DNA from: Ostrea edulis
Lineage: Eukaryota
Length of the DNA: 64,000 nucleotides
NCBI RefSeq assembly: GCF_947568905.1
Contig: NC_079169.1
Coordinates: 57,784,001-57,848,000, forward strand
Direction of reading: 5' to 3'
Shown here: one piece after another, positions 22,669 through 62,008 of the stretch
Layout of the letters: each line of letters opens with the position of its first letter
Position numbering within the stretch: the stretch's first letter is position 1
Program-made: the position numbers and the translations under genes
Notes under the pieces: model-generated
What the model was told of the DNA's origin: nothing
Databases searched by the model: none
What the model saw: only the letters and a program-made list of their open reading frames with translations

Positions 22669-25600
22669 TTAAATCATTTCAATCAGTTTCTCTCCTTGCG
22701 ACCTCTGTAGTATATCTTCCGCTGTGATGGAGGGCACATCAAACGGAGCGTTTTTCCATCTCTTCTTAACATCTCTTCTTCCCATACTATCCTCCAACGA
22801 AAACCTCTCTATCTTCAATATTGGGAATTGTGCGTTTTTGTATATAGATACGTTTCCAAGATCAGACCCACAGGAGCGACAGAGGAGTTTACCAACAGCA
22901 CACTTCAGGTCTTCGTCCTGAAATTGCGGTTTTGGAAGACGTTTTCCTACTACCCGCTCTTTTATGTCATTACAAATACATGCATGGTGAGCGTCCTGGA
23001 TTTTCCGAACTTCATTTGACATGCAAATGTATTTGCTGCACTTCTCACACCTATTGGAAAGAAAATATACAATAAAATATTTCATATATGTTACCGGGTT
23101 CCAAGTAACCATAAAGACAAACACAATCGCTGTTTTCAATATTGTATTGATGGCACTGTAAATTATAGTCTGAAACAAACATATTCACATTCAATACACA
23201 ATAAAATAAGACATAGTAACATGAAACAAAGACAGATAATTTCACCTATATTCATATCGCAGAAATTATCTTAAGTGTTGTAGAAATGGTAAAACTAAAT
23301 TACTTTTACTATATGTATCATGATTTGATCAGAATAAAATATAATTTGCCAATATTTACTATTAATTCAATAGAAAATGAATATATCATAAACTTTTACT
23401 TCAGACTGGAATTATTAGGAAATCACACTCGCCCTGGTCTTCTAACGTTGTACTTGTTCAGAAGAAAGACAACTCTATACGATTCTGCATTGACTTTCGA
23501 CAACTCAACAAGAAAACTAAAAAAGATGCTTACGCTTTACCCAGAATTGAAGAACTCTTAGATTCAATGGCAGGCAACAAATTCTTTTCAGTTATCGACA
23601 TGAAATCTGGCTATCATCAAGTGGAAATATATGAACCTCATAAAGAAATAACTGCATTTACTGTTGGTCCACTTGGATTGTATGAATTCAATCGAATGCC
23701 ATTTGGTCTGTCGGGTGCTCCTGCAACTTACCAAAGATTGATGCAAGATATCTTAGGAGAACTTCATATGAAAATTTGCTGTATATTCATCGACGATATC
23801 ATAATCTTTTTCATCATCATTTGAAGAGCACATTTCCAATTTGAAAATAGTTTTTGATAAAATCCGAGAAGCTAATTTGAAATTGTCTCCAAAGAAATGC
23901 TCATTTTTTAAGTCAAATATGTAGGACACATTATTTCAGAAAATGGAGTTGAAACTGATCCAGAGAAAATAGACAAAATAGTTAATTGGCCTACTCCATC
24001 AACTGCAGAAGAAGTTAGAAAATTTATTGGATTTGCTGGTTATTACAGAAGATTCATACATCATTTTAGCCAAATTTCCAAACCATTAACTGAACTTATG
24101 CCAGTTCATAGTAAAAAGAAAGATAAGAAGAAGAAAACAGTTAAGCAGAAAGAATGGTCATGGGGAACTGAACACCAAGCAGCATTTGATACATTGAAAC
24201 AGAAGCTCTCTTCGTCTCCTATTCTTAGTTATCCAGACTGCAGTAAACCATTTGAAATTCATACTGATGCTAGTAGAATAGGACTTGGTGCTATACTCTA
24301 CCAAGAACAAGATGGTTTGAAGCGAGTAATTGCCTTTGCTAGTCGCAGTTTAACTAAATCAGAACAGAATTATCCGGCACATAAATTCGAATTTTTAGCG
24401 TTGAAAATGGGCCATCTGTGATAAATTTCATGATTATCTATATGGAAATTCTTTCACTGCAGTAACTGACAACAATCCTTTAACATATGTTCTGACAACC
24501 GCAAATTTAGATGCTACAGGACACCGATGGCTAGCAGCACTAGGAGTTTACAACTTTGAAATAAATTATCGGCCAGGCAAAAGCAACGAAGATGCAGACA
24601 CCTTATCAAGACTGCCTTCAACTGCAGAGAACATAAAAATATCAGCTGATTCTGTGAAGACTATCTGCAACAGAACAACTGTTCCATTTATTGAAACTAT
24701 ATCCTGTGACCAGAATACCATCAATAATGTTGAAATAGACCTTCACATGGACATCAGAAATGAAATCAATTGGGCGGATTTTCAAGATCAAGATTGTGTA
24801 TTAAGAATTTGGAAGAAATATGTCGGAGAGGGAAAGAAACCGAAGTGAGGTGAAGTTTCACCCAGTCCATTATTTAAGCTCTTCGATCAACTAATTCTGG
24901 AAGATGGAATTTTATACAGAACCGTCAAAATTCAAGAAGAAGACCAGAAGCAGTTAGTGGTGCCATCAGTCCAAAAAGCCAATATTTTAGAAGCTCTTCG
25001 TGATGAAATGGGTCATCAGGGTCGTGATAGAACTACCAATCTTATATGAGACATATTCTACTGGCCTGGTATGACGACTGATATAGAGAAATGGATCGGT
25101 CAGTGTCAGAATTGCATCAAAAGGAAGAAGGAACCATCGATTGCACCTTTGGTTAACATTGAAACTACTCAACCTCTAGAACTAGTGTGTATTGACTATT
25201 TATCTTTGGAAAAATCAAAAGGAGGATTTGAAAACATATTAGTCATAACTGATCACTTCACTAGATATGCTCAAGCCATACCTACTCGAAACCAAACTGC
25301 CAAAACCACTGCTGAAATTTATTCAATAACTTTATCAACCATTATGGAATACCACAAAGAATTCATTCGGATCAGAGGGCAAATTTCGAAAGTAATTTGA
25401 TGAAAGAGTTGTGTAATTTAATGGGAACCAACAAATTTAGAACTACTCCTTACCACCCCATGCGTAACGGAATGACTGAACGCTTCAATCGAACTCTCTT
25501 AAACATGCTAGGAACTTTAGACACAAGTAAGAAACAAAACTGGAAATCTTATGTTGCTACTATGGTCCATGCATACAATTGTACTAGACACAAGTCAACA

Positions 25601-28600
25601 GGTCAGTCTCCATATTTTCTAATGTTTGGCAGAAATCCAAATTTACCAGTCGACATTGCATTTGGTCTAGTAAGGAAGTACAGTCATAAACCACATACAA
25701 AGTATATTAAGGATCGTAGAAGCAGATTGGTTGAAGCTTACAAGACAGCTGCTGAACAAATTAAGAAGGCACAGAAAAAACAGAAAAGTAGATATGATTT
25801 GAAGACGAGGGGTGCAGTGATACAGAAAGGTGACAAAGTATTGGTCAAATTGGTCAGATTCGATGGAAAACACAAACTTTCTAACAAATGGGAAGATGAC
25901 ATCTACATTGGTACAAATCAACCAAATAGAAATATTCCAGTTTACACAGTCCAGAGAGAGAACGGTCTGGGGAAAGAAAGAACATTACATAGGAACTTAT
26001 TATTCCCTATTGGATATATCCATAATGAAAATTCAGCACCAGACAAACCAAGACCTAAACCTAGACCTAGAAAATCAAAGATAGCTGAAACCAGAATTCC
26101 AGAATTCAGTAGCTCATCAGATGAGGATGAAGTGTTGTTACGGAAACATGAGCTGACTTCAGCCAGTCAGGACCCTAATGATCTTCCGTCAATAACTACT
26201 TTGTCCGATGCTGGAAGCGCTTCCCACGCCACTGAAGTAGATGCTATGCTTAACACTGGTGTAGAAAGCGAGGAGGTTGATGAAGATGATGCAGCCACAG
26301 GAGGAGATGAAACATCCGAAGATGAAGTGGAGGAAATTCCTAGGCGTTCTACCAGAAGGAGAGAACCGCCAAAGTGGATGACCACTGGATAATTTGTGGT
26401 TAAATCAGCAACTACAAAGAACTGGAAAGAAAGAGCAGATTATGCTGTTAAGCTAATGGAAAGAGGTTTAATCCAAAATGCAGAGAAAACGTCTGATGCC
26501 ATTTTGAATTTTATATTAACTTCATAATGTAAACCAGCATTCGAACGGTTTATCCAGTATTGAAATTTTAGTTCAACTTGAAGATATCTATCCAGATATC
26601 AACTCGACATTGACATTAACCTTTTTTGTGTCCTGAGATGTGGCTCTTGGATCCCATATTCCTGTTCCTGCAGTAGATGACGGGAATGACATGGAAGTCA
26701 TTTTTCAAGGAGGGGGAGTATGTGGTAGTGTGTGTGTGTGTAAATAAATTTTTAAATCCCAATTTAAATAAGTTTATACATGTCACTAAATTATAAAGTA
26801 TTACATTAATTGCTTTCCTTAAGGTTATTTTAATAAACCCTTGATAAATTATTATGTGTTGTATGGATTTCCATAGATTGTCATTAGTGACTAGTGTTGT
26901 TTATGGGTGATTGATTTTGGAGGTTTTGGTTGGTTAAAAGTTTAGGTCAGGTGATTTTCTTAGAGTTCTTTCTAGTCTATTCAATTATCTTTGAATATAA
27001 CACTTTTGCCAGTTAAGCTGAATGGTTGCATTTCCTATATACTGTGATCTTTCTTTTTATGGGACTTTAATCATTGCAGTGCAGAGCTACCTGATGTGTT
27101 GATTGGTCGTACTGGTCTGGTACCACATATTGGACTATAATTTACAGTGCCATCAATACAATATTGAAAACAGCGATTGTGTTTGTCTTTATGGTTACGT
27201 GGAACCCGGTAACATATATGAAAGGCGATATATGCACTAACAATTGTCGTTTCTCAATAAAGGAATATTTACTAATCCACTTTACCGTAAAACGTATTCC
27301 CCTTGGCGAACAATTTGACCATCTTTATTCTGTGCAGCAAGATCGCGCTCAGTTTTGGATTTCTTCTGCATAAATAGAATTATATCCATGCACTTTCTGC
27401 GGTTTGTACGGAACTTTTCCCTCAGCATTTCTATTGCACGGTTCATCATGGCTTCGCGGATCATGTTCAATTCCTCCCTCTCTGCTGTTTTGTCGCCTTG
27501 TGCTGCTACAACGTAGTATTTTCCATTCTCTCTTCTTCCTCTTCCTGCAATTGTACAATAAAATCACAATAATCAGAAACATTTCATCAATGTTCGACAA
27601 AAGTGATGGCGTATTCACCTTTCGCTTCCTAAAGTTCTAACATCGCATACAGTACCTCTTGCTTGAACCATAGCGATCTCGTTGCTGACGTATGAGTACC
27701 GAATGACGAGGTTGCATTTCTGAATATCTAACCCCTCTTCTGCTACTGACGTTGCAATTACAATCTTGTGTTTGCCATCTTTGAACAATGTCAAGGCATC
27801 AGTTTGTTGAACTTTAGTCATCCCTACGGCAAAGATAGGTAATAGTTAAAGTAATTTGAAGGACAAATTGTGCCAGATATACCGATCTATGGGTTATTTT
27901 CTGCTTTTACGGATGGGGAAACAACTGGGAGACATACAATTACGGTGGAAATAGGAAAAACATACTTTTGACAATACCCATTTCTTGAATTCTATTGTGT
28001 AATATCGTGTTGATTTTCTTCTCCTCAAATAGGTCTATCATGTTATATAAGATTATGTGTGTATAGACCGTTGCACGTGGACTCTTACATACAATTTATC
28101 AGAAAATGAGTACCTCCTGCGTTGCATTTCGCTTGGGCACCAGTGAACATGACTGGTTTGAATTGTCGAAGGTCTTCCGTCTCTTCCATCCAGCGATGGA
28201 TTGCTTTCACTAGATCTCGTGTTCTCACAAAGATAATTCCACGGGAATCTGGCACAGTTGCAAAAGCATTTATAACCAGTTTTTGTAGTTCAAGGAGTTT
28301 TGGGTTGTCGTGATTTGGGTCATCTGCATTTATTTGCAAATTTGCCTGACTCTCTGTAAACAAATAAGATTAAATACAATTATGATTTTTGATAGTTGTT
28401 CTCCTCCTAGACACCTGATCCCTCCTCTAGTGTGTCCAAGGATCCGTGTTTGTTCTATTCTTAATTTGTATCTTTTATGGGATTTATGAGACTGATCACT
28501 GTTTGTTATGTATATTTGTGATACTTTTATTAATCAAATGATCTGATTGAGTTGTATTTGGACATTTCGCTTTATGATGTGATACTAGCTTTATGATCAT

Positions 28601-31600
28601 ATGAATTTATAGAACGAAATTTTTCCGGTATCTATTTTTATACAATCTTCATATGATGTGAAAATGCTATTAACTTTGCAAGTTCATTAAAATCTTAGTT
28701 GTCAGTCTGTCTAACAAGCAAGGTCTTATATGAAGCCATCTTCACATCTCAAGGGTTATTGATTCGTTACATCGTACTAACCCTTGACATCAGTCACCAT
28801 TCAAAACATGGGTTCTAGACAGAGCATATGATTGGTGTTGCAGCCTGTAGCGTGGAGTCTATCAGAAAACGGTTTTTATAATCTGTCAAAAACGAAACTA
28901 AACACGTATAGCGACGACAACATGGTGTAGAATTTGTGGCCAGTTACCAGTAGACAGATACCGTCGATTGATTTTAAGAAATTAATTTTCTTTGAAGAAA
29001 CAATTAAACGAAGTTTTAGATGCTTTTCACTTATCTTTTCTTCAATAGACGACATTTTTTACATTCTGGTTATGTTCTTAATCAAACTTGCAGCTGATAC
29101 AAGAAATATCATTGGCTGATTTAAAGTTTAGCGTAGTGTGTCATTCTACATCTCCAAATCTTTAATGGTGACTCTCAAAACTCCTATAAGGTATACGAAA
29201 AAGAGAGTTGAACAAACACGGACCACAATGGCTCTGGAGAAGAAATTGAAAATATGAAAAAATCACGGACAGATTACAGGTGCGAAACAGGTGTGAAGAC
29301 GGAAGACAAATCTCGATCAAAAAGTTCTTTCAACTTTCAGCTCGACTGAGCTAGGATCAAATAAATTTCAAATCAGTCCTTATTTTCTTCTAAGAAAGCA
29401 GTTTTTATTGTTACAAAACCCTTTGGTTTAATCGTATTAACCCTCAGTTTAATTTTGATTTCAACATCAAGCGATGAAACCTTGTCTTGGCTTACCAGTA
29501 CAGAGGCGAATCCATGACACTACTAAAGGGGGTTTATACTTTTTCTGTCACAAAAGGGGGTTACAGAACTAATATTTCTCAACAAAGAGCGGTGGTACAA
29601 CACCATCCAGATCGCAAACTACACTGTGCACCCTGTCCGATTACTTGAGAAATTCAAGCGATGTGGGGAGCTTTAATGAAAAGATTAACTTATCCTCGAA
29701 AAAAATTGAATTGTAATGAATGGAGAATACATTGGTCCGATGTTTTTCAGACACAAAAAAGCCATACACCTTCAGTTTACCATGATAAATGACCAAAGAA
29801 CCGGGTCTATTTTTCCTATTATATAATAGCATAGGTGCATGTTCTTATAACTACATGTATTTATAAACACAATCTTATCCCATTTTACGGCCTAGCATAA
29901 GGGAAGGTAGTGCTATTGAGGGGTTAACAAACTGTCCTCCAACCAGCACAAAGTATACTGTATACATGTAAAACTTGTACGGTACCAATTTGGATGCACC
30001 AGATGCGCATTTCGACAAATCTAAGGCTTCAACTCTTACTTTCAAAGAATGACTTCAGCTTTTTGTCAGTGTCGTCTGCGATGAGATGTTCATCCCACTT
30101 TTTCAGCTCTTCTCTGATGAATGCTAGAGAGTCCGAGGCTCGAGCGTCGGTGTAAATGATCAGTGCTTTGTTGTACATCTTGAAATAGGGAGAGAAAGAA
30201 ATATGATTTTGTTTGCAGAGTATTTTATGTTATCATTATCAATTAATATAAATATTCCCAAGAATATCACAAGGACTTTGAATGGTTTTTATTAATATCA
30301 CTCTAGATTTGAGATTTTCATTAATGTTTCGCTAAGCATAACCCGAATTTTTCGTAAGTGTAGTAGCTAAAAAAGGTGCACGTGTTCATCATTGCTTTGA
30401 AGAAATATTAATCAAATTTCGTCAAGAAACAATATTTCGTTACATCCAGGTAGACCCGGCAGGTATGGATGAAACGCCTTGCTTTCTCGTCCACTATTTT
30501 GGCCTCCTCTTTCCATAGACGGCTTAGCCACTGTGTGTACTGGTCATTGCCTCTAGCAGCAGGTGGCTTTAAAATGGATTGGTCTCCCAACTGTGTTGAA
30601 TCTGTCAAATGAAAAAATGTTTTATGAAATTGCAAAGTGTTTGAAAATCGTTAATTTTTTCCCATTGAGATTTTCTTGTACGTTTCGAATTGATCATCCA
30701 TTTCTGTATAGCTGCCATGATCCCTTCAATGGTTCTTCCAAAGTCATTTTTCTTTCTGTGGGGTGTTTTCTTTACGTCTGAAAGTGGTAAAAGATAAATA
30801 CTTTATTATTTATTTTTTGGTCTACTGGCGTATAAACATGTAGCTTGAAATTATCAATGCTTCTAATAATTTTCACAATTTCTTTTTCCATTTCCAAGAA
30901 GTTTAAAATTCAGGGGTTTTTTCATGTACATTCTATATATGCTACGATATATGCAGTAAAGCTGAATTTTACAATTTTTGAAGCTAAAGGTCGTGCATGT
31001 ATGTTCTCATATTTCATAATGAATTTCAATCTGTCTTTCAAATTTACCGAACGGATTTCATTAATAAATGTCAATGTCTCACAAACTTTCATCGGAAAAT
31101 GACCAAATGTCCATTATTAGCTGAATGAGATACAAAATGTAGTTGCATTTTAAGTGATATTGATCGGTAAGATGGTCGTCACTCTAGATATAAATCTTAA
31201 TATTTGATCTTAAAATTACATTGCTCGGGAATATTGACATGTTGTGCTAATTCTGTCCTATTATCTTCCACTACACTTAGTTCTTCAGCATCCATATTAG
31301 CCATCATGCTGTATATCCACTCCATTGCTTTCTCCTCATTTTTGGCCTTTCCGACACCCACAGATGCCGTCAAGCCAACAATCTATAAATAGAAAGCATT
31401 TCATGGAAATTTAATCGTATAGATATCATTATCAAATACCGAGTATTTTATAAACATTCAATTTTCATGTTTTCCAGATCACCTGAGGAAGTTGTTTGTG
31501 TCTGTCTTCAAGTTTCAAATCCAGATAATGTGACATGATTTGGTTATAAGGATGCTTTGCATGAGAGTGGTGACACTCATCAAATATTATCAAAGAAAAG

Positions 31601-34068
31601 TCCTCAATCCGAACGTCTCCGACCGCTAATGCGTTGACCAAAATTTGAGAGGTGATTACAAGGATATCTTTCCTAAAATAGAATTTCAAAATTCCCATTT
31701 ATCTATTTATTTGTTTGTCTTATGTTTTGTAAATTGTTTGAAAAACATAAAAAGATTTACTGTTGTATCCAACAGGACAAATTTTGAAGACTTTCAGTTC
31801 TCTGTTTTTCTCCAGTGATGACTTTCACTTTACAGGCTAAGAACTCTTTACAGACTTTCCCCTGCTGTTCAGCAAGGGCACTTTGTTCCACAAGGAAGGC
31901 CACTTTTGTGATATGTAGACGCCTACGTTTTTCTCTGTGATTCTACAAGATTTGTTAGCTTAATAGTTGATACAGAAGCCTATTGTTGACAAGAGAATCT
32001 ACTAGCGCTTCTAATTTGTACATCACTGATACTGAATGATTTCCATATATAAGATAAATTCGCACCTGGATTATTTTCATGGCAACGTGAGTTTTTCCGC
32101 TCCCTGTTGGAGCAACTATGATGCAGTTTTTATCATCGAGAGCTGCTCTGGCTAGTTCTAACTGGTAATTTCTCAACTGGAGTTGTTTAGCAGGTATGGC
32201 ATCTTCATCGCTTGAACTGTCTGAATTGTTACCATCCACGGACTGTACATCTTCAAAGTGAAAGATAATCGTGTCAAAACAATACCAGAGATGTGCACTC
32301 TATCCATGATGGCTTTTTTGGGGGAGAGGGCCTACATAGGCTATGCCTGTTGCCCAATCCTGTTGAGTTTCTCAATAAAATATGTTTAAATTAAAATGAT
32401 GGCTTTTTAAAAATATTTGATAACTTAATTTTAGTCCATTACCTAATTCTGGTCCAACGATGTTCGGACGGGAGCCTCCTTCTCTCTGAATAATGTCGTC
32501 TACACTGTTTCCAATGCTATCTAACAACTTGTCAACAGTGGATGAATGGATACTACTTAAATTACCGGAGTATTCCCCACTCACGGAAGTAAAATCTGTT
32601 CCCGATGGTCGATCACTCATAGAGGAAATCTCTCTTCCTAAAGGTGTATCACTATTAGAGAGAGAGTATGGCATAGGCATTTTTCCTACAGGGAGGGCTA
32701 AATCTGGTAGGGATTCTTTCGCATGTGACTTGCTTTTAGAATTTGCCTGATATTGGCGTTGAAAGTTATCTTGAGCTTCCCTTTTTTCGCGTTTTATTTG
32801 GTCCTCTTCTTCTAAATCGCAGTTCGAGAGCATTGAATCCAGAGTAAGTTCACTCTCTTCCGAAATTGATAGATCGGCAGGCGGGATTGATTGATTTGCA
32901 AAGGAATTTTGAGGTGGACCTGAATCTTAAGACAATATTAACATTAATGTTTCTCATTGTTTAGCCATACTTAGTTTACATTCTGTCTTCAATGAACAAA
33001 ATGATAATATTTACCTGATGTGTAGTCCTCCAGGATAGATATGGGTTTCATTGCAGACGTACCAAATGATGTCCTTGTGTCACTCTCATTCTGTGATTTC
33101 CAGGCTGTGAAGATAAATATTCTCTTACAAATTATGAATAAAATACAACTGTTCATAGACATCAAATATCATACTTACATTGAGCAAATTCGATGTCCAT
33201 ATTTTCCACTATTGTAAGATGCCCTGCAGAACACAAAACTTCCAGAAGTCCATGGTACCAATCATCGTGTCGTTTCCACACTCTGTCTAGGAGCACCGTG
33301 GTACCGGCTATTTTTCCATGGTTGTTCATCTCTGCCTGAATCTCCTCTATATCAACATTGTTCAGTAACCCTCGACTTGACAGGTCTGGAAGAAGATTAC
33401 TGGGGTCTAATCGATGAACTAGTTTGGCGTTATGTCTCAATAATAGTTTTCTGTACTTTTTGAAAACATCACTTTTTACTTCCCCTCCTTTCAATGCCCT
33501 CGCAACATATCTGTATTCTGCAAGGAAAATTTTTAAAGGTTAAATCGAAAATAAATAGTCTATACAATAGTGTACATATGAAACTTGCATGTATGAAATC
33601 AGTGTTCCTTACACTTACCATTTGCTTCTAGAGCTTCTACAAATTTGTTCCATTTATTTGGCTTTTCACTATCCAGTAACAAATTCAAAAGGCAGTCCAT
33701 CGATTGAATGCTCCCGCAGTTTTTACCAGTTTGGCGAACTTCTTGACGACCCCCTGTGGGGAAAACATGATATTTTGACATTTTATATGTCTTATGATAA
33801 AAGTAACACTTGCATTAGATATATTTTCAAACATCATTTTGAATTCTTTACGATCAAAATTTGAGAGATACGCGACCAAAGAGTTTGACTTACTGGGGTC
33901 GATGACATCACTGAGATGAGACACTAGTTCCAATCCACTTACACATTGTACGATTAGTGGTCTATACAGCTCAATAAGTTTGGGAATTTCTGGAGTGTCC
34001 AGGGTACACGTAATACTATTCAAAGCGGACAGCGAACTCATAGGCTCGGGGCCACAGCAGTCCTCCAT
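22669..34068 (-). CDS. RIG-I-like receptor A (2xCARD, DExD/H helicase, Zn-binding CTD), 16 exons, 1125 aa, intact
   Basis: Exons: 33894-34068, 33619-33753, 33179-33517, 33015-33104, 32443-32919, 32066-32250, 31761-31942, 31483-31672, 31220-31382, 30682-30777, 30444-30601, 30040-30178, 28114-28353, 27656-27823, 27286-27544, 22669-23050. All introns are GT-AG and the exons total 3378 nt in frame. Motifs: [43 protein letters not shown]; CTD CEKC...CRSC. Confidence 0.93.
23080..23170. repeat. Left arm of a 91-bp inverted repeat (partner at 27133-27223)
   Basis: tttcatatatgttaccgggttccaagtaacc...aattatagtc is the reverse complement of 27133-27223, with one mismatch seen. Confidence 0.9.
23400..27127 (+). 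mobile_element. 5'-truncated, degenerate Ty3/Gypsy LTR retrotransposon in the last intron of RLR-A (antisense to host)
   Basis: Domain order is RT ([28 protein letters not shown]), RNase H ([13 protein letters not shown]), integrase ([27 protein letters not shown]). There are many frameshifts and stops. PPT at about 26707-26720. No gag, protease or 5' LTR was seen. Confidence 0.92.
26721..27127 (+). repeat. 3' LTR of the Gypsy element (407 bp)
   Basis: Starts TGTGGTA directly after the PPT aaggagggggagta and ends with the inverted terminus TACCACA. Confidence 0.8.
27133..27223. repeat. Right arm of the 91-bp inverted repeat
   Basis: gactataatttacagtgcc...ggtaacatatatgaaa is the reverse complement of 23080-23170. 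Confidence 0.9.
29965..30020 (-). mobile_element. Fragment of the hammerhead/retrozyme repeat family
   Basis: The reverse complement reads atttgtcgaaatgcgcatctggtgcatccaaattggtaccg, matching 3088-3128. The CUGANGA half is missing. Confidence 0.75.
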
Positions 34069-34524
34069 TTTTCACCTTTAATGGAAGTCAACGTAAACTA
34101 TGCTGTCATTGTCTGGTAAATTATCTTCATCGAAAGATATCCTTATTAAATACTTGTAGATTTTAATTAAAGAATGTTTTAAAATTACCTGATATAGATG
34201 TATATTTCCGAAAAGTCCGTGTTTGTAAAAATATTAACTTTTTTCTGCAAACAGTTATTAACAACATTTACTTTCTGTTTGATTTCTGTGTATGGCTCTA
34301 TAAATAGTTTATCGTCTATTTTTAGGTATCCGTGTTTTCCACAAACCACGTTTTGGTGGTTTGTAAAACGTGGATAAGGTTTAAACTAAAAAACATTTTT
34401 CGACTCTATCATGAATAAAATTGGTATCCTGTACACACTTTCCATGGCACCGTATTCTTAGATATTTTCTTTGAAACGTGTTTTCAGAGGGAAAATGCAG
34501 ACGACAATACAATACACAAGTGGA

Positions 34525-34866
34525 TGCTTGATTGATTGTACAATGTTTAACGCCTCTCTCTCGAAAAGTTTTTACTCATATTGAGACGTCACCAAGACCG
34601 GTAAAGGGCTTCAAATAGGCCTTTGCTCGGCGCGTACGGCCTTTGAGCAGCGAGGATTCTTTAACGTGATAACCTACTGTTGCACTAGACATCCGTTTTT
34701 AAGGTTATCTCTGAGGACCCGTGACATTCACACCTGATGCCGAGCGTTTGGCGATGGAACTGTCACTACCTGTTTTAACGAATTTGGTCTGTCGCGGCCG
34801 GGATTTCAACCCCGGCCTTCCGCATGCGGGGTGAACGCTCTAACCTCTAGACCACCGCGGCAGTTC
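34525..34866 (-). mobile_element. Near full-length tRNA-derived SINE between the two RLR genes
   Basis: Minus-strand head gccgcggtggtctagaggttagagcg...gggttgaaatccc (A and B boxes), the conserved body and a (caat)n tail. Confidence 0.75.
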
Positions 34867-35479
34867 CCATGTGAATGACTAACTAAAGCAAATATATATA
34901 TACCTAGATATAATATGTATTCCTTTAACTGTACTATACGAAGCGATGGTCGCCCTTATTTACGTTTCAAAAATGTCTGATCGAGAGCATGCAACATTGA
35001 CCCAAACACATGGAAATATTTTGCTCATGGACGCACTGCATGGAAAGAAATGACAACAGGTGGCTTGAGACACGGTTAAACACCTCACCATACGCTACGC
35101 CATATTCTGCAGACTGAAGGAGACCAAACAAACAAAACTTGAACTGTTACTATTTTATTGTAAATTCATTACTTCTAAAGAAAGCAATTTTCTTTTCAAT
35201 TTACATGCATGTATAAATAGTGTGACACTAAGATGAATTTTTCAATACGTATTTTCTTTTTCATTAACCTACCAGTATATATAAAATGAGGAAGCTTCAC
35301 GAACTGCGTCATTTCCCTGTACATTTTCTAAAACTTTAGAAATAATTGATTATGGCTAAAGGACAAAGGTATCTAAAAAAAAAATTATCTACTTTACCGC
35401 ATTAACATGTATGTACCTGTGTATAATTTATCAAAGATTTATATTTAAGAAATAATTTTCATATTTGCAAGCACATGAG

Positions 35480-35741
35480 GCGTGAACTGAAACGCTTTAC
35501 GTCAGCATACTTCGTTTAAAAAAAATATTCTGACGCAAAGCGCTGCTGTTCATACCCTTTTTGTATTTTCGAAAACTGAAATTTATTTTATATTTACATT
35601 TTACTTTCATTTCTGTCGTAATTTCCAGTCATTCAAATAGCCGTACTACGTTTACCAAGATTCATGCTCACATTGCTTACATTCATGAGAAAATGGCTAT
35701 CATTTCAGTTGTATTGGTAAAATCGAAGGTAAAACATTGGA

Positions 35742-35817
<76 letters not shown>

Positions 35818-36300
35818 GAAATGTTACAACTTACTGTTTAGTGTATGTTTTACATAGCTACTCCTACAGAGCTTTTGATAACGTCCCTGCACTCCTTATA
35901 CACCTTGTTATGTGGTAATAAAAATAGATAGATAGATAAAATAAAATATGATGAAAATAGAATGTAACGAATATAAAAAAAAAAAAAAAAATACACGTAC
36001 ATGACAACATGCAATAAAAGTGTCGCCACTGAACCCCTAGATGGTTGTCCTATTATAAAGCATGATATATGAAAAGATGCAAAACAATGCAAATTCGATC
36101 TCAGCACAGTCTGATTAAAATCAAACCTCTCACTCGCTATCACAGCGATACCTCTCAATGATTTCGGTTTTTCATTAGATACGAAACAATATTTTATACA
36201 GTGCCGTATAGCATTTTTCGGAAATGTGTTTATAATTTTAGCAACAGAAAAATCTGACATAACTGCATATGGAAGATACATTTAGTTTCATTTTACATGT
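35480..36300. promoter_or_regulatory. Cluster of IRF/ISRE-like motifs in the shared divergent RLR promoter
   Basis: GAACTGAAAC (35484-93), GAAAACTGAAA (35571-81), TTTTACTTTCATTTC (35599-613) and AGTTTCATTTT (36284-94), plus an inverted pair of TGACG half-sites (35493-35542). Motif similarity only. Confidence 0.45.
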
Positions 36301-36460
36301 CGGTACACAGGTGACGATATGTATTTTGGTGTCCACATGTAAGTATGTCAATATTATTGTTTGCGTGGATGTTGGTGTTTGTTTTTGTTTTCAAAATTGT
36401 ATGATCAGTGATTTTAATTATAGAGTGTGTTGGTGAGAGGTCAAATAGCACTACTGGACG

Positions 36461-38098: not shown

Positions 38099-38162
<64 letters not shown>

Positions 38163-51600: not shown

Positions 51601-54600
51601 CATGAATTTTAATCATTTAATCATTGATTTGTTATATCTACTTCATATTTATTTCTATTTATGTAGTTCAACAATCTTCATTTAAGTAGTTGACCTTTTT
51701 GCACTTATTGAAAATTTTGAGATTTCAGTTCAACTTTTCACCATCAAACCTTGCTTTTCCCACTGAATTTATTTTTGTAACTTGAAATACACCTCTTCAA
51801 GTTTCTGGTTATACATAATCTATTTCTTTTGAGACATTGTATTGGGTTTTGTGAGATCTTATATTTTGATCATTATTTTGTAAAATATATTGGTGTGAAA
51901 TATGTGCAATTTTAACAATTAATAAATTCATTCATTGGATGAATATACACACAAAAACCCTCTTAGTTATTGCATATAGTGTATATCTAACATATAAAAT
52001 ATTGCTTTTCTCTATTTTTTAGTTATATGACATTTTAGAGCTGTTCAAACATAGCACTTTTTTCCAATATTTCGTGACCTTTTTGCACCGAAAATTATCT
52101 CAAAGTTGTTTTTCCATGTTGAACCCAAACTAAACATGATAGAAACTTTTTATTTGGCAAATTTCATATTGGGGTCAGTAGGAACCTGTCCACAAAGTTT
52201 CATGAAAATCTGAGAGATAGCATGTGCCGACCTCTGCCTGATATCATAATGGACACCCTCTTAATATCATCAAACTTTGTTAATTGATGAATCTTGGTTA
52301 GTGAGAATTTTTGCCTGTTCTACAATGTATCAGAAGAGCGATTCTAGGCCCATGGGCCTCTTGTATTTTAACAAATCACAAATCTGTTTGACTTTACTCT
52401 TCAGCTTTCGACATCTACAATACATTTAAAATTACTTATTGCTCTTCGTTTTGAGTAACTGCCAAAGGAACTGATTTTGGCTTTTCTTATCAGTTTCTTC
52501 AATTTTGTCGGAGAAAGAGAGATACCTTTTGGATAATAAACTTTGAAAGTTCGTTTTACGATAAGATCAATCTATATCATGGATATACTATATCGTGTAT
52601 TTGTATCATCTGAGTAGGTAGTCGGTTTTACGGCGTCCATTGGAGTAGGAAAAGCCAAAACAGTTGAAAAGGCTACAGAACATGTACAAACAATCATGTC
52701 TAATATGGACGCCGAGTACCTGGTGACAGTACAGGAAAACAAGGCTGATTTGGGAAGACATGTGAACTCGCCAGAACAATGTATGCTGTTGTTTTCCTTG
52801 ATCTCTCTCCAATGTGTAATTATTCATCGCGTTAGAAGGACAAACCTGTTTTGTTCCTATTATAATTGATCATCTTATATTATGACTTATCTACTATGCT
52901 GATTGTTTATCGCCTTTTCAAACGTCATATTGTTGAAAGCATAATATGTGTCTTTACTAATTTCGAATGAATTTCCTTCTCTCATGGGAATTTCATGGAC
53001 CAATATCTGGCTGTGACCACCCTGAGTTCATTTGCATAGAAAAGAAGGTTGCGGGTGATTTAGGGTGATTTGTATATTTAAACCAAATGCTATATTACGG
53101 GAGGCGTTTGAACGATACAAATCCTCGTTATAATAATCTAACTTCATAGAATATATTTTTAAAAGTGGTACTTCTCCAAATGCTAATGGCACATCGATAT
53201 GAGTATAAAAAAACTTGTTGGGACGAGATGTTGAACATTGATTGAATAATTATAATCAATCTTTCAGTCATCAAAGAGGTACCTATACGTCGGAGGGATG
53301 CGTTTGGAGAGCGTGTAAAAGTGCTAATGACTACAACTGAAATGTATTTGGAAGACACAGACGGTATGTATGCTTAACAATTTGAATGATGTTTTATATT
53401 ACATAGGCACAATGTTCAGTTACAGTAATCCTTATAATGATGACATTCTCAATCATTTTCTTTAACGACTAAGAACGACTTTGGTTGAGGATCTCATTTA
53501 GTTGTTTATTTCAGTCGAGGTTGTGGACAGGAACGCTGTAAAACCCCCCTCATCAAAAGGCAATGAGCAGTATACCCAGTGGTTGGAGGAAACCCTTTTG
53601 AAATCATTAGCAAAGCTTACCAAATCTGAAGCAACTCGATCGCTGTATACTCTAAGGAAATATTTAGAGGTGTGCTTTACCTTGAAATATCCGAGCTATT
53701 TTTAGCTATAGTCTATAGTACAATATATGTTTACTGTTTTGGGAATGCAAGCAAAATATGATGTACAAAGTGACATCTGATAAAAAAAAAAAAAGAGCTG
53801 TTGAATAATTCCAGTGAATGCGTACCTCGATTTTCATATTTCGCAGAATATAAATGTTTACTTTAAAACTGTTGAAACACTGGCAATATATAAATCATCA
53901 TTTGCAAGAAGTGGCATATTTGTTCATAATTTAATTTCTTTCAGATATACAACAATGGCCTCATCCATCATTCATATGCAAGAGCAACTGATGCTCTGTA
54001 TTGCATTAAATCTGGCATAGAGAACCTTAAATTAGCTAAAAACGAAAATGAAATAGAGAAGAGAGTTAAAGCGTTATTTGAAGGTAATTCTATGTCAAAT
54101 GTATTTGTATTTTTCCCTCTATTCCATTTTTTTCTCTCTCACACATATACACGCTTATCTAAATCATTCCAGAGGAATATGTAGCATTAGAAGAATGCGC
54201 CTTAGACAGAGAAAGGACCGCAGAAAATCCTCTTCTACTGAAGCTAAAAGATATCATAATAGCCAGATATGCTGAAGAATCAAACATGAGAGGAATCGTC
54301 TTTGTGCGAACTCGTATTCTTGCAAATATTCTTGTTTCATGGATGGATAGCACAAAGGAATTGCAACATATAAAAGCCCGGAAATACACCGGTGCTCAGG
54401 CTCACAATATAGATGGAGGTGGGTAGCATCTTTCCTCTTTAATTCATGCCTAATTTTCGCCAGAATCTCAGACCTTGTATAATAATGAGATGAATTCTAA
54501 CATGTAAATCCTTTCCAATCTTTTGCAGGTATGACAAAACATGAACAGATAAATGCAATCGAGCTCTTTAAAGATGGCCAGTTCAAAATCATCGTTGCAA

Positions 54601-57600
54601 CCACTATTGCAGAAGAGGGATTGGATATCAGAGAGTGTAATCTCGTTGTAAGATATGACTACGCTGGAAATCCTATTTCTATGGTGCAAGCAAGAGGTAA
54701 TCTTTTTTTGAACTGTAATCCTGCAGCACATATCATTACTTATGTACATGTAATTATTTCAAAATGACGACCTAAAATAACAAACTCATTTCAAAGATCC
54801 GAAATTCAGGGAGTCCCAATCTTTTAATTGTCATCTCTATCATGGAATCTATCGACGATTATGATGGGCTGAAAATGAAGAGGAAGACTTAGATACTTTG
54901 TCAGAATGGTTAAAAAGAATGAGAGGAATATTAAAATCCCGTATCAATCAGTGATGAAGGAATTGAATAAATCACACGAGAAATATGTATTGGTTCCAAC
55001 TGACAAAGCTTTCTACAATATTGTCATCGATTTCATGATCATTTTACAACTGTATTTTAGAAGAGTTTGATCTTGATCCCACATTTGATAGTCCAACTTA
55101 CACTGAAAGTTCACTCAAAGAACGAAATCCCATATCCATACACTAATATTCCATTATTACATGTAAATGGTGTTTACATGACACAACTGATTCGATACCC
55201 AAAAGCGTCTTCTAACCGAGGCAAGTTACTGACAAATAAAATAAGTTGATGTGACAAGGTTTCAACAGTATCGTTAAAATTCAACATTTTGCAAGTGCTA
55301 TGGTCATTGTGCAAAAACAATCTGTCATTATGTCGAATGCTATCTAAAATGTTTCATACCAATTGTTAGGCCGTTCTTCACATACTGATTTTGACTAAGG
55401 ATTAATCCGTTTAAACTTTATTCTTAGTTTATGGTATTGAAGGCAGATACCTAGAAGGAGTAAGTATTCCCTATTTGACTAGGCACACACACTCGCCATA
55501 GCCCCTCTATCTTGAACAGGAAAACGGAGTAATCTGTTGTTGAAATCAGCGTGCAAAGAACGACCTCATTTAGTATGAAACATTTTACCCAATGACAGGT
55601 TGTAATGGTAAATTAGATCGTTATAACGACCATAAAAATTGCGAAATGCTGACTTTAAACGAGATTGTTGAAACCCCTCAAACATCAACTTATTTGTCAG
55701 TAGCCTGTCTCGATTTTCAAAAAGTGATCATATGTAGAACAAGCTCTTGTGTATCGAATCGGTATATAAATATAAACACCATATGCAGGTGATAATGGAA
55801 TATTGCTAAATGAATTATGGGTAGTTGACGATGGAAAAGCTGAAATAATCCAGTTTGTCATATAAAGTTGAGATGCTAGTTTGCCGATAACATCCATGTT
55901 CAATAAAATATATGAGTTTGAAGCAGATGTAGAAGACTGTGGTAACTTTTATTTCGAGTTCAGTTGGATATACCGAAGAAAATTTGAATGAAAATGATTA
56001 TTGTTCGTAAATAAAACGTAGCTGATCTACCGGTATCTAAATGTTGAGTTTAAGGCTACAGCAAGATATGTTTTCATCTCATGTAAAAGGTTTTGAATAG
56101 ATTAAGCTTTGTAAGAATATTGAAACAGGTCAGTGATAAAGGAACATAATTCGTGCCCATGGGAATTCTATAAGATTGTTGGAAGACCTGATCACCAAAG
56201 ACTACGAAGGTAGTGTCATTGAGGAACACCAGCATCTTTTTATATCAACTTCAGAGTACATTGGTGTGGTCCTCTTCACATCATCATTTTGTTTGAAATA
56301 TAACATGTCACCGAAAATGTTCTCCAAACTCTATATTCAAAAGCTAAAATTTAAGACAACGAGGGTTTATTTCAAATCATGAGCAATGTGTAAACTCATA
56401 CGTGTATGTTCGTTTTATAAAGTTCAATCCCCAAAAGTACATTCTCTGTTTAAGTTTTATAAACCAGCAACTTTTAAATTATGTGCTAGATAAATCTTTG
56501 AGGTATGGTTCTCAGTTTATGGTGTTTAAAAGGCCTGATCTCACCACTAGTTTCCAGGGGTCAGCTGTGTTTGCCACGTACTCAATTTTGTTTTCTAAAT
56601 GAAAGGCAAATATAACGAACAGTGATCAATCTCATAACTCCTATAAGCAATACAAAACAGGAAGTTGGGCAAACACGGACCCATGGATATACCAGAAGTA
56701 GGATCAGGTGTCTAGGAGGAGTAAACATCCCCTGTCGACCGGTCACACCCGCCGTGAGCCCTATATCTTGATCAGGTAAACGGAGTTATCCGTAGTCAAA
56801 ATCAGTGTGCCAAGAACGGCCTAACAATCGGCATCAAACACGTCAGACAGCATTTGACCCAATGATAGGTTGTATTGGCAAACTACATCGTTATAACGAC
56901 CATAGAATTTGCGAAATGCTGATTTTAAACGAGATTGTTGGAATCCCTGCACCATCAACTTGTTTGTCAGTAGCCTGCTTCGATTTAAAAACTTACCAAA
57001 CGCAGAACAAGCTCTTGCGTATCGAATCATTTGAGAGATGTAAACACCATATGCAGGTGATAATGGAATATTGCTACATAAATATGGGAAGTTGACGATG
57101 GAGAAGTTGAAATCATCCCGTTTGTCATAAAGTTGAGTTGTTGGTTTGCCGTTAATATCTACTTTCAATAAGATATCTAAGTATGAAGCAGAAGTGGACG
57201 ACTCTGTGGTAACTTTTATTTCAAGTTCACTGGGATATATTGAATCGACATATGAATGAAAATTATTATACATCGTCGATATATTTAAATGTCGAATGTA
57301 AGGCCACAGCAAGAGATTTTTCTTCTCACGTAGACGTTTTTGAATCAATTCTGCTTCATATGAATATAAAAAACATGTCAGCTAAAAAAAGGAGCACAAT
57401 TCGTGCCCATGGGGATTCCAACAGAGTGGTGGAAGACCTGATCACCAAAAACCGCGAAGATATTGTCAATGAGGAACTTTAGCATATTTTTTCATTTCAA
57501 CTTCAGAGTACTTGTGCGTGGAATCAGAATGGCGTTTAACATACTAATTTTTGGATGACTGATCACTAGATAGGAATATTTCCGTTTTCCATTTTTGTTG

Positions 57601-59614: not shown

Positions 59615-60178
59615 CTTATTATTTTCATCCAAATATTTTTAAACAATACTGCTTGTACATGCATTTTGTAATATCAATGCAGGTCGAGGTCGCGCAGAAA
59701 ACAGCCATTTCTATGTTTTGGCTTCTGCAGAAAAATGCGTTGCTGAAAGAGAAAGGAACAACACTTTCAAAGAAACGATGATGGAGGAAGCTATGAAAAA
59801 GGTTCAGCAACAAATTGATGATAATCACGATGCGTTTCTTGTTAAGCAACGTGAGTTACAAAAAGTGGCAAAAAGAGAACGTGATGTAGCAAAACGAAAC
59901 AAGAGCGGCAGAGTCGTACAGCATGGACAGTTTTCACTGAGGTAATTGCGGTAATGTTCTATTCTGTAGTGGTAGTAATGTTATGTATGTTTGTGTTACT
60001 TGTGTTCTTTTTTGCATAGATCCGTTGCTCTGTGCATTCATTTACTGTTGTATAATCCAGAATGAAAGCGTTGAGCCAGGACTTCTTTGTAATTCACAAA
60101 CATTATGCAATATACAACTTTTCTAATTGTTTGATTTTTGAAAATAACAATTACTCGTACAATTGCTAATGTTTTGTG

Positions 60179-60250: not shown

Positions 60251-62008
60251 CTCTAAAGTGCGATGATCGCTCCAAAGTGCGATGGTCTGCGCCAAAGTGC
60301 GATCGTTTGTTAACGTTACGGACCCCAAAGTGCGATGGTCACGCCAAAGGCCGACGGTGCGGAGTTCAGTAACGTTTGTGATGTCACGTCATTGTGACGT
60401 CATTCTTAACGTCTTTCAAAATAAAACCAAAGAAATGCAACATGGAGGACAGTAACGGCTAGGTTTACACTGTTGAGGATAGTGAGAACGGCAAAGTACA
60501 TTTGTTGTTGAACTATCTACTTCGCCCAAACATTCTTTATTCATGATTATTTATTACTTTGACGTATTTAATTCCTGGGGGTATGTTGTAATACAAAACA
60601 TTCTATATGATTTCGCGTTGGAAACTCTTGTGTTTGATAACACGACAACTAAATGGTAATGAAATAAGTTCTTATTCTTATCTTTTGGTGAAACAACACA
60701 CGGTTTGTTCAGTCTGTACCAAAATACTGTGTCGTTTACAAACCAATGGATTTCGGCATGTCACACCATCGCACTTTGGCGTATCAGACCATCCCACTTT
60801 GGCGCATGAGTGTGGACCATCACACTTTGGCGTGTTACACCATCGGGGTTTCGCACAAACCATCGCACTTTGGCGTGACCATCGCACATTGGAGTCCTAC
60901 ATATATATATTCTCATTAAAAATCAGCATCTCACAAATTCTATGGTCGTTATAACAATCTAGCTCACTAATACAACATATCATTGCGTCAAATTCTGTAT
61001 GACTTGTTTCATACCGATTGTTAGGCCGTCCTTGGCACGCTGATTTTGACAACGGATAACTCCATTTACCCGATCAAAATATCAGGCTCAAGGTGGGTGT
61101 GACCGATCAATAGGGGATGCTTACTCCTCCTAGGCACCTGATCCCACTTTAGGTATATCTAAGGGTCCTTCTTTGCCCAACTTTCTACTTTACATTGCTT
61201 ATAGGAGTTATGAGATTACTCACTGATCGTTATGTTCCCCTTTCATTCCTACGAATTTATACATTCGTTTTTCTTTAAAATCACTAGCCTTTCAATTTGA
61301 CATTAAATACCTAATTAGTCATGGAACAAAACAAGTTAAATCACAAATCAGTATAAATATAAGAAATGAATGCTTAGGTTGTTTGTATTATAAAGGTCTA
61401 TCAACATTGGAAGCGACGGGTATTGTGACTCTTTGCCTCCATCGTTTTATACCACCCTAAAGCAAACGACATATCCGTGAATGCCTTGAGCGTTTCATAT
61501 CAAATATATATTTCATTTATTTAAAAATAATCGATACAAGTTGCTGATAGATATGAAAGTAAATGTTGTTCTCTGAATGATTTATATTTACACAGATGAC
61601 ATTGATGATTCATATTTTTTCAGGTGTTTGAAATGTAGCACATTTCTGTGCATGTCCAGTGAGCTACGAAAGTTGCTGAATGCCCATCACGCTTGCATTA
61701 GTGAAGATATCAAGAACAGCATCATATGCAAAAAGTTTTCCAAACCAGGTTATCCCGGAGATGATATAGAAATGGGAGTCGGTCAATTTAATTGCAAAGA
61801 ATGCAATGTGAAATTGGGAACCATTGCTCTGTATAAGGACATCTTCTTTCCGATATTGAGCATCAAAGCCTTGAAAATCGAAGATGATATGGAGAAAGGT
61901 GATACGTTGAAGAAGTGGAACTTGGTAGAGAAGTATTTCCATGTGCCTGAGATTACAACAGAAGATCTTGAAAACATTGGGAAATTCGGCAGACTTCTCG
62001 AATTTTGA
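36461..62008 (+). CDS. RIG-I-like receptor B (2xCARD, DExD/H helicase, Zn-binding CTD), 16 exons, 1093-1177 aa depending on the exon 4 donor, intact
   Basis: Exons: 36461-36629, 41242-41376, 41485-41826, 42012-(42089 to 42341), 42820-43230, 43356-43516, 43636-43811, 44886-45084, 52618-52780, 53268-53363, 53515-53669, 53945-54083, 54173-54418, 54529-54696, 59683-59941, 61624-62008. Intron phases match RLR-A and six exons have identical lengths (135, 163, 96, 139, 168, 259). Motifs: [43 protein letters not shown]; CTD CLKC...CKEC. Confidence 0.92.
36879..38389 (+). mobile_element. Non-autonomous Helentron (HINE) carrying about 7 units of a 166-bp HindIII-site satellite
   Basis: 5' ttagctcacctgagc and 3' ctcaggtgagc subTIRs; 3' hairpin ggcccatgggtc; gtccgtc microsatellite; aagaaccac units at about 37139, 37305, 37468, 37635, 37801, 37962 and 38187, most with AAGCTT. 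Resembles the oyster Cg170/HindIII satellite. Confidence 0.85.
39612..41146. mobile_element. TIR MITE (CAGTGTTTTCC termini, hAT-like) hosting a Harbinger-type insertion
   Basis: cagtgttttcc at 39612 and ggaaaacactg ending at 41146; a 6-bp direct repeat GCTTTG at 39606-11 and 41147-52. Confidence 0.65.
39931..40863. mobile_element. PIF/Harbinger-type non-autonomous element (933 bp)
   Basis: TIRs gggctgttccagaaat / atttctggaatagccc, with a TTA TSD at 39928-30 and 40864-66. Confidence 0.8.
42050..42343 (+). repeat. Coding minisatellite, 7 x 42 bp (ETAHKEPPNHQEKS), in RLR-B exon 4
   Basis: Seven near-identical 14-codon units; each ends at AAA|GTGAG, and the last at AAA|GCGAGT. Confidence 0.92.
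44020..45505 (-). mobile_element. Two Penelope-like 3' fragments flanking RLR-B exon 8 (about 44020-44180 and about 45130-45505)
   Basis: Recurrent 3' block. The minus frame LTNKLMVQGFQQSRLKSTFHKFYGRYNDLV matches the RT C-terminus at 56821-57348. Confidence 0.7.
45508..52364 (+). mobile_element. Non-autonomous Helentron (second family) split by a 5.26-kb insertion
   Basis: 5' tttttagctcttctgag pairs with 3' tcagaagagc; 3' hairpin ggcccatgggcc at about 52347. Internal units of about 127 bp contain aagtaggtcaccgtgacctacttt. The unit sequence resumes after 52264. Confidence 0.75.
46997..52260. mobile_element. TTAA-specific DNA transposon relic with GAG...CTC termini (Sola3-like), 5264 bp
   Basis: TTAA at 46993-96 and 52261-64; imperfect TIRs of about 60 bp (gaggccgtcca..gatatcaagcag..ggcacatgc vs gagggtgtcca..gatatcaggcag..ggcacatgc). 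Broken plus-strand Cys/His-rich coding remnants near 47810-47970 and 50330-50620. A HINE fragment is nested from about 49373. Confidence 0.65.
54860..58290 (-). mobile_element. Cluster of degenerate Penelope-like (Naiad-type) retroelement copies in RLR-B intron 14
   Basis: Minus-strand RT motifs YLYWIPKLHRNP, KTYDCSTLYTTIPHDKLK and LYDKRDDFNFSIVNFPYLCSNIPLSPAYGVYISQMIRYARACS. Copies: about 54860-55405 (+), about 55440-56400 (-) and about 56590-58290 (-). Confidence 0.8.
58641..59613 (+). mobile_element. Non-autonomous Helentron (HINE) with about 4 units of the 166-bp satellite
   Basis: Same termini as 36879-38389 (tttttagctcacctgagc; ctcaggtgagcgatgtggcccatgggcc). It ends 70 bp before the exon 15 acceptor. 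Confidence 0.85.
60244..60901. mobile_element. MITE with subterminal ccaaagtgcgatgg repeats, inserted in a (TG)n/(TA)n tract
   Basis: Termini tgtaagactc / gagtcctaca, with multiple direct and inverted aaagtgcgat motifs in both arms. Confidence 0.65.
60950..61245 (+). mobile_element. Penelope-like 3' fragment
   Basis: Reverse complement of the recurrent block at 56590-56900. Confidence 0.65.

Follow-up and report, generated by a model that had tools for sequence, protein, structure and literature searches.

What do two RIG-I-like receptors (RLRs) of matching architecture, standing head to head in an oyster genome, recognise, and how did they come to face each other? The pair in question, RLR-A and RLR-B of Ostrea edulis, lies in a 64-kb window (the whole stretch of DNA analysed: contig NC_079169.1 of NCBI RefSeq assembly GCF_947568905.1, positions 57,784,001 to 57,848,000 of the forward strand), with a G+C content of about 35% and no runs of N. 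Counting from the first nucleotide of the window, RLR-A is read from the minus strand (ATG at 34068, stop codon at 22669-22671) and RLR-B from the plus strand (ATG at 36461, stop codon at 62006-62008). To our knowledge, very little has been established about the ligands that invertebrate RLRs prefer, and for oysters we know of poly(I:C) binding by CgRIG-I-1 only. Our reading, to which we give a probability of roughly 60%, is that RLR-A and RLR-B are intact, transcribed paralogues, that RLR-B has lost the charges of its RNA-end pocket and engages RNA differently, and that their layout results from an inversion of RLR-A.

Both genes are members of the RLR family, with tandem CARDs, a helicase core and a zinc-binding C-terminal domain (CTD); over their whole length the two proteins are 38% identical. 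Both have intact copies of helicase motifs I, II, III, V and VI, among them APTGSGKT, FDECHH, GLTAS and QARGRGR in RLR-A and SPTGSGKT, FDECHH, GFTAS, ATTIAEEGLD and QARGRGR in RLR-B. The second CARD scores above the Pfam cut-off (56.8 bits in RLR-A, 45 bits in RLR-B), the first is seen as partial matches on exon 2, and both N-termini align with those of CARD-bearing orthologues. The Hel2i domain (Pfam RIG-I_C, PF18119) is annotated on the orthologues P0157 and P0201, with which RLR-A and RLR-B align over their full length at 67% and 62% identity, respectively. The CTDs match Pfam RIG-I_C-RD (PF11648) at 2.3e-23 and 4e-19, respectively, and each carries the zinc cysteines C1, C4, C57 and C60. 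An initial annotation of this DNA had listed the helicase motifs and the zinc cysteines as present in both genes, and the motif scan and CTD alignment bear this out.

The two proteins part in the pocket that, in RIG-I, holds the RNA end. K858, K861, K888, H847 and K851 of human RIG-I contact the 5'-triphosphate (5'ppp), in agreement with the role that the initial annotation had given to K861 and K888; the basic cluster around K858/K861 is missing in MDA5 and LGP2, neither of which prefers 5'ppp, and K888, K907 and K909 are also required for blunt-ended double-stranded RNA (dsRNA) (PMC3045611). Pocket residues were assigned by HMMER alignment of the oyster CTDs to the sequences of solved CTDs, including human RIG-I (DDX58). 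The best solved match of the RLR-A CTD was the human RIG-I CTD (2.5e-11), and that of the RLR-B CTD was the LGP2 CTD (4.3e-5). K861 and K888 correspond to K54 and K79 in RLR-A (codons 22888-22890 and 22813-22815, minus strand) and to Q54 and S79 in RLR-B (61784-61786 and 61859-61861, plus strand). The alignment at both positions is secure, because a zinc cysteine, three residues further along, and a conserved proline fix it in place. The difference of K/K against Q/S, drawn earlier from a manual alignment, was confirmed in this way, and the short motifs quoted with it are indeed present (GKLLC, PILKIE and PKPQF in RLR-A, GQFNC and PILSIK in RLR-B, with GLTAS against GFTAS in motif III).

The zinc cysteines C810, C813, C864 and C869 of human RIG-I are cysteines in both oyster proteins, and H830 is a histidine (H21) in both. 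F853, which stacks on the terminal base pair, is F43 in RLR-A (22921-22923, minus strand) and Y43 in RLR-B, the aromatic cap together with the H830 equivalent being found in each. At the K858 position RLR-A has L or C beside the capping-loop lysine K49 (22903-22905, minus strand), and RLR-B has I or M beside E49 (61769-61771, plus strand), the residue that is K49 in RLR-A. K907 is R in RLR-A and K in RLR-B, K909 is K in RLR-A and N in RLR-B, and H847 is L and F, respectively; K851 is deleted in RLR-A and was not scored in RLR-B. Compared with human RIG-I, RLR-B lacks K858, K861, K888 and K909; with E at the loop lysine and F at H847, it does not show the basic cluster of RIG-I. The isoelectric point (pI) of the CTD is 8.8 in RLR-A and 6.3 in RLR-B. 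RLR-A shares with human RIG-I the CTD fold (TM score about 0.8), the four zinc cysteines, H830, F853, K861, K888, K907 (as R) and K909; it differs by L at H847, by the absence of K851 and by the lack of a clear match to K858, and it is not a RIG-I orthologue in the tree described below. The suggestion that RLR-A is a 5'ppp sensor, made in the initial annotation, stood as far as K861 and K888 are concerned and faltered at H847, K851 and the K858 position.

AlphaFold2 models of the CTDs are confident, with a predicted local distance difference test score of 93.2 for RLR-A and 94.6 for RLR-B. In Foldseek, the top match of the RLR-A model was 3LRN, the human RIG-I CTD with 5'ppp dsRNA, and the RLR-B model matched first the 5'ppp RNA-bound CTD of Caenorhabditis elegans DRH-3 and then LGP2. 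A top match of this kind might be expected if RLR-B recognised phosphorylated 5' ends through basic residues elsewhere in its CTD, where it keeps K36, K37, K40, K3 and K97. We consider this very improbable, given that the site used by DRH-3 itself is positively charged, much as in RIG-I (PMC8464030), and that RLR-B has E, Q and S at the equivalent positions, and that the differences in Foldseek rank are small.

When and how often did the charges disappear? A 68-row tree and a careful 39-row IQ-TREE run agree in topology. An oyster A-type clade is sister to an oyster-only B-type clade (ultrafast bootstrap 100, SH-like approximate likelihood ratio test 99); together they are nested in the RLRs of pteriomorph bivalves, which themselves belong to a lophotrochozoan group. 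The vertebrate receptors RIG-I and MDA5/LGP2 are placed elsewhere, MDA5/LGP2 grouping with amphioxus in the careful tree, and RLR-B does not join vertebrate MDA5/LGP2. Sister clades with such support within bivalve RLRs uphold the earlier claim that the A/B split is separate from the RIG-I/MDA5/LGP2 split of vertebrates. This agrees with a published report in which the RIG-I/MDA5/LGP2 divergence is absent in Lophotrochozoa (PMC8998645). Judging by the trees, RLR-A and RLR-B are products of a tandem duplication within the oyster lineage. The stem of the B clade is about three times longer than that of the A clade (0.85 against 0.27 substitutions per site).

Three subclades make up the B clade. 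RLR-B of the window belongs to B1, together with the Saccostrea proteins P0201 and P0202, and CARDs are present in this subclade. B2 comprises proteins of 741-837 aa without CARDs from Ostrea, Crassostrea and Saccostrea (P0004, P0198, P0199, P0200); no CARD-like exons were found upstream of the Saccostrea B2 genes. Members of B3 have CARD or DED N-termini; one of them, P0009, gives a match to the DED-family Pfam domain PF01335 and no CARD match. Besides the genes of the window, O. edulis has a B2 protein (P0199) and a B3 protein (P0203). The phenylalanine in motif III of RLR-B is common to most of the B clade.

Comparison of pocket residues across these groups gives a direction to the change. 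Both K861 and K888 are lysines in the RLRs of scallop, mussel, ark clam, Solemya, a unionid, Mya, Lingula, Lottia, a chiton and a leech, as well as in vertebrate RIG-I, which shows RLR-A to keep the ancestral state. By contrast with RLR-A, IEMGVGQ and PIL(S/N)IK, that is E49, Q54 and S or N at position 79, are found in every B1 and B2 member (seven of seven, from Ostrea, Saccostrea and Crassostrea). B3 proteins have Q or N at the K888 position and a variable residue at the K861 position. In vertebrate MDA5 the K861 position is occupied by E or T and the K888 position by N, S or K, and the single LGP2 in our residue table has R and C there. As far as the aligned sequences go, the derived pocket state of B1 and B2 is old, has become fixed and converges on that of MDA5 and LGP2, a pattern that speaks for a new function being maintained and not for decay. 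It is this clade-wide, convergent loss of end-pocket charges in one oyster RLR lineage that is newly added here.

Could both proteins nevertheless sense generic dsRNA, the CTD differences being side effects of an arms race (for example evasion of CTD-binding viral antagonists) or the outcome of neutral drift after the duplication, with ligand preference unchanged? Bivalve RLR CTDs are reported to be under positive selection and to differ in surface charge among scallop paralogues (PMC8998645), the Crassostrea counterpart of the A type binds poly(I:C) (PMC5557890), and architecture and motifs are the same in the two genes of the window. However, three charge-removing substitutions coincide with RNA-contact positions of RIG-I, and their likeness throughout B1 and B2, in three genera, argues for purifying selection on the new state and against ongoing diversification or drift. 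We therefore regard this explanation as unlikely. It also seems quite unlikely to us that RLR-B is a duplicate whose function has been weakened or partly lost, in which the absence of K888 and K909 lowers RNA affinity in general and which acts as a modulator, for instance by mixing with RLR-A or MAVS through its CARDs, and not as a sensor in its own right. Such a fate would suit the long B stem branch and the near-neutral CTD. It would not suit the retention of the ATPase motifs, the zinc site, Y43, H830, K907 and the CARDs, nor the transcription of RLR-B (see below), nor the fact that the B clade has survived, with further duplications, in at least three genera; moreover, MDA5 is a true sensor despite its own residues at K861 and K888.

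That both genes are intact follows from their models. Exons were searched for by comparing stop-to-stop open reading frames (ORFs) of both strands mutually and against full-length homologues, and splice sites were set by reading frame, the GT-AG rule and the junction peptide. BLAST of one paralogue against the other at loose thresholds was too noisy to reveal missing exons, which were located by full-length homologues instead. In both models the frame is open and every intron is GT-AG. The intron phases are the same (1,1,1,1,1,0,2,0,1,1,0,1,1,1,2), and the exon lengths of RLR-A and RLR-B are close, for example 135/135, 163/163, 96/96, 139/139, 168/168 and 259/259. The coordinates, the head-to-head arrangement and the matching phases given in the initial annotation proved correct in both open gene models. 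Its description of two intact 16-exon genes holds for RLR-A; RLR-B has 15 firm exons and one inferred from homology.

RLR-A (22669-34290, minus strand) has 16 coding exons, encodes 1127 aa and is 67% identical over its full length to the Saccostrea RIG-I-like proteins P0157 and P0207. RNA and DNA contigs were compared over 30700-36699; X1 and X2 are RNA-type runs from a close relative or other strain, about 2% different, and X3 and X6 are DNA runs. Nine RLR-A introns appear as spliced joints in X1 and X2 contigs, at the exon borders of the model. All these joints read CT..AC on the plus strand, equal to GT..AG for the gene, and none occurs in X3 or X6. The 5' untranslated region (5'UTR) is unspliced and contiguous with exon 1, reaching at least about 34260 in an RNA contig.

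From the ATG onwards, exon 1 of RLR-A (33894-34068; RNA joint 33753/33894-8) encodes the first part of CARD1 and exon 2 (33619-33753; RNA joints) the rest of it, with a partial CARD_2 match (E 1.6e-4) below the Pfam cut-off. CARD2 is on exon 3 (33179-33517; CARD_2 2.2e-15, CARD 1.5e-10; RNA joints). Exon 4 (33015-33104), a 90-nt, in-frame linker mini-exon, was revealed solely by spliced contigs (joints 32925/33015 and 33104/33179) and brought the model to 16 exons and 1127 residues. Exon 5 (32443-32925), modelled on homologues and supported by RNA joints, encodes an acidic, serine-rich linker between CARDs and helicase. Model and RNA agree on the next four exons: exon 6 with motif I, APTGSGKT (32066-32250), exon 7 (31761-31942), exon 8 with motif II, FDECHH (31483-31672), and exon 9 with motif III, GLTAS (31220-31382). 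Exon 10 (30682-30777) is a model joined to exon 9 by an RNA joint (30777/31220). The remaining exons come from the model: exon 11 (30444-30601), exon 12 (30040-30178), exon 13 with the motif IV region (28114-28353), exon 14 with motif V and the start of motif VI (27656-27823), exon 15 with the end of motif VI and the pincer (27286-27544), and exon 16 (22669-23050), which holds the whole CTD (RIG-I_C-RD, 2.3e-23) and the stop codon.

Two further features of RLR-A were seen. Spliced X1 and X2 contigs carry a 96-nt in-frame deletion with non-canonical ends in exon 5 (32639-32734), X2 also having the undeleted form; in this low-complexity linker the deletion is probably a difference in length between alleles or strains and not an intron. 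The last intron, of 4.2 kb, contains a 91-nt inverted repeat (23080-23170 and 27133-27223, 99% complementary), and between its arms there is a plus-strand ORF (25397-26392) with a weak match to an integrase core (rve_3, 8.5e-6).

RLR-B (36424-62008, plus strand) has 16 coding exons, one of them inferred, encodes 1093 aa and is 62% identical over its full length to P0201 of Saccostrea echinata. A second RNA contig (36424-36630) covers exon 1 and continues past its donor, which shows that RLR-B, too, is transcribed. Exon 1 (36461-36629), beginning with the ATG, encodes the first part of CARD1, and exon 2 (41242-41376) the rest, the partial CARD_2 match (E 0.003) again falling below the Pfam cut-off; exon 3 (41485-41826) carries CARD2 (CARD_2 1.1e-11, CARD 8.9e-10). 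The inferred mini-exon 4 (42012-42089) is placed by homology to the Saccostrea proteins P0201 and P0202. Models place the linker on exon 5 (42820-43230) and motif I, SPTGSGKT, on exon 6 (43356-43516). Exon 7 (43636-43811) ends in a weak donor, GTTTGT, which was accepted because P0201 has the same peptide, KPLLPQYDVFVV, across the junction. Next in the model come exon 8 with motif II, FDECHH (44886-45084), exon 9 with motif III, GFTAS (52618-52780), exons 10 (53268-53363), 11 (53515-53669), 12 (53945-54083) and 13 (54173-54418), exon 14 with motif V and the start of motif VI (54529-54696), and exon 15 (59683-59941). The whole CTD (RIG-I_C-RD, 4e-19) and the stop codon are on exon 16 (61624-62008).

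Tandem repeats are found at several points of RLR-B. A 42-bp repeat (42050-42330; 6.7 copies, 95% matches) starts inside the inferred exon 4. In frame, it makes a 14-residue unit, and each unit offers a phase-1 GTGAG donor (42090, 42132 onwards), giving six alternative, frame-preserving ends of exon 4 (42089 to 42299). Intron 1 contains a 166-bp tandem repeat (37121-38109; 5.9 copies, 85% matches) flanked by an (AT)n run (38103-38160), and intron 4 a perfect (TC)25 run (42598-42647).

We now turn to the origin of the head-to-head layout. A single-exon gene of the MFS_5 family (molybdate-anion transporter-like; 19863-21224, plus strand; Pfam MFS_5 7.5e-81) serves as synteny anchor; its intronless product of 453 aa is more than 90% identical to a Crassostrea protein, and the gene also stands beside the RLR array in Saccostrea. 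In Saccostrea cucullata, and likewise in S. echinata, a single strand carries MFS_5, A, B2, B1 and B3 in that order. The array thus consists of four same-strand RLR genes, an A type, a CARD-less B2 (835-837 aa), B1 and B3. In the window the order is MFS_5(+), A(-), B1(+), and no B2 lies between A and B1. Tandem duplicates normally arise in direct orientation. Combined with the same-strand array of Saccostrea, this means that the head-to-head pair is best read as the result of a local inversion of RLR-A within the Ostrea lineage, with B2 lost or relocated, and not as an old bidirectional unit. Crassostrea does not help to polarise the inversion, since no RLR sequence was found in the 10 kb downstream of MFS_5 in C. 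gigas and in a second Crassostrea assembly. Inverted repeats flanking RLR-A were not found across the gene; only the intronic 91-nt pair and small local hairpins were detected.

The spacer between the two ATGs (34069-36460) measures 2.4 kb, and at least 2.1 kb separates the outermost transcribed bases (RLR-A contig to about 34260, RLR-B contig from 36424). High-copy repeats occupy 34500-34900, 35500-35700 and 36100-36300 of the spacer, and 32300-32500 in intron 5 of RLR-A; in these bins the DNA runs show a summed contig depth that exceeds that of adjacent bins by a factor of 50 to 20,000. A perfect (AG)27 run lies at 35762-35815. Interferon-stimulated response elements, interferon regulatory factor elements (IRF-E), NF-kB sites and STAT/GAS motifs occur in the spacer (34069-36460) at or near background density, without enrichment.

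These data bear on the claim of the initial annotation that the genes form a co-regulated pair. Conserved bidirectional pairs usually have less than 1 kb between transcription starts and keep their arrangement across species. The oyster pair departs from this pattern on both counts, with its spacer of at least 2.1 kb and with another RLR between A and B1 in Saccostrea, and a repeat-filled spacer without an excess of immune motifs leaves co-regulation by a shared promoter unsupported. A bidirectional unit in which a shared promoter drives a 5'ppp sensor together with an end-independent sensor or regulator would fit the head-to-head ATGs 2.4 kb apart, the presence of contigs of the same two RNA-type runs over both genes, and the joint induction of 11 of 13 C. 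gigas RLRs by OsHV-1 (PMC8998645). But the layout is not conserved in Saccostrea, the spacer has the properties just described and RLR-A lacks part of the ppp pocket, so that we give such a unit a low probability. By analogy with C. gigas, co-induction of RLR-A and RLR-B is likely irrespective of layout.

How might the two proteins then work? We propose that a tandem duplication in the oyster lineage yielded A and B. RLR-A has kept the ancestral lophotrochozoan CTD, with the cap F43 and basic residues at K861, K888, K907 and K909. The B sister clade has evolved fast, B1 and B2 acquiring K to E at position 49, K to Q at 54 and K to S or N at 79, which then became fixed, and the tandem CARDs, ATPase motifs and zinc site of RLR-B have stayed intact meanwhile. 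On this account RLR-B may still be a signalling-competent, dsRNA-dependent ATPase for which, as for MDA5, the phosphorylated end of the duplex would matter less and its body more, RLR-A would remain an end-binding sensor, and the head-to-head layout would have come about when A was locally inverted in the Ostrea lineage. The functional split itself is plausible on the pocket sequences, at about even odds. That RLR-B might be a regulator in the LGP2 sense, as the initial annotation also allowed, is unlikely, as tandem CARDs and all ATPase motifs are kept.

Several points weigh against our reading. The pocket of RLR-A is partial in comparison with RIG-I (H847 replaced by L, K851 absent, K858 ambiguous), even with K861 and K888 kept, and its Crassostrea counterpart is known solely as a poly(I:C) binder (PMC5557890). 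Foldseek barely separates the two CTD models, the TM scores to RIG-I, LGP2, MDA5 and DRH-3 CTDs all being 0.75-0.85, and scores so close cannot discriminate function. The changes of K888 and K909 in RLR-B could mean generally weaker RNA binding and not a new specificity. Finally, the polarity of the inversion rests on two Saccostrea genomes and the rule of direct orientation.

A wider possibility, which we put forward tentatively and consider rather doubtful, is that oysters have independently rebuilt the three-way division of labour of vertebrates within one tandem array, with A (CARDs and a basic end pocket) being RIG-I-like, B1 (CARDs, pocket lost) MDA5-like and B2 (the same CTD lacking the pocket, no CARDs) LGP2-like; the window would then hold A and B1. 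In that case a single bivalve RLR would have given rise to all three types once oysters had diverged from scallops and mussels, A being secondarily inverted.

Comparison with known receptors places the two proteins further. CgRIG-I-1 of Crassostrea gigas (1152 aa) is a receptor that binds poly(I:C) and, through its CARDs, CgMAVS (Huang et al. 2017, PMC5557890). Its architecture of two CARDs, helicase and RIG-I_C-RD is like that of RLR-A, which groups with the 1152-aa Logan proteins P0158 and P0208 (64% identity), their link to CgRIG-I-1 being by length alone. RLR-A represents the orthologue type of CgRIG-I-1 in a different species, at 64-67% identity, and differs by its inversion relative to the Saccostrea array. 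Returning to the reading favoured here, in which RLR-B has moved away from end recognition, RLR-B most plausibly works like MDA5 (IFIH1), to judge by the resemblance: it likewise has tandem CARDs and a CTD without the K861/K888 lysines, and its PILSIK resembles PCLSIK of shark MDA5. It is nevertheless not orthologous to MDA5, being sister to oyster A-type RLRs. LGP2 (DHX58) is the best solved sequence match of the RLR-B CTD, and chicken LGP2 has the same PILSIK; LGP2, however, has no CARDs and RLR-B has two, and the CARD-less B2 relatives in oysters are separate genes outside the window.

Tandem arrays contain 8 of 13 C. gigas RLRs, and CARD-less types have also been described (Yao et al. 2022, PMC8998645). 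RLR-A and RLR-B likewise represent a lineage-specific local duplication; tandem expansion of RLRs in bivalves is already published in that work, and the present pair adds new members to it. The same work centres on grafting of N-terminal domains, with no mention of K858, K888, pocket lysines or a head-to-head pair.

The pair amounts to a natural experiment, in which two proteins, 38% identical and of the same architecture, set an ancestral basic pocket against three fixed charge-removing changes, and these changes resemble those by which MDA5 and LGP2 differ from RIG-I. If RLR-A and RLR-B do not differ in the RNAs they prefer, then the pocket lysines would be no predictor of specificity outside vertebrates; in other respects the locus is an ordinary case of the tandem expansion already published for bivalve RLRs. 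If their preferences do differ, animals would have separated end sensing from duplex-body sensing on at least two occasions, and oyster antiviral biology, concerned with OsHV-1 and with RNA viruses, would gain a concrete pair of sensors.

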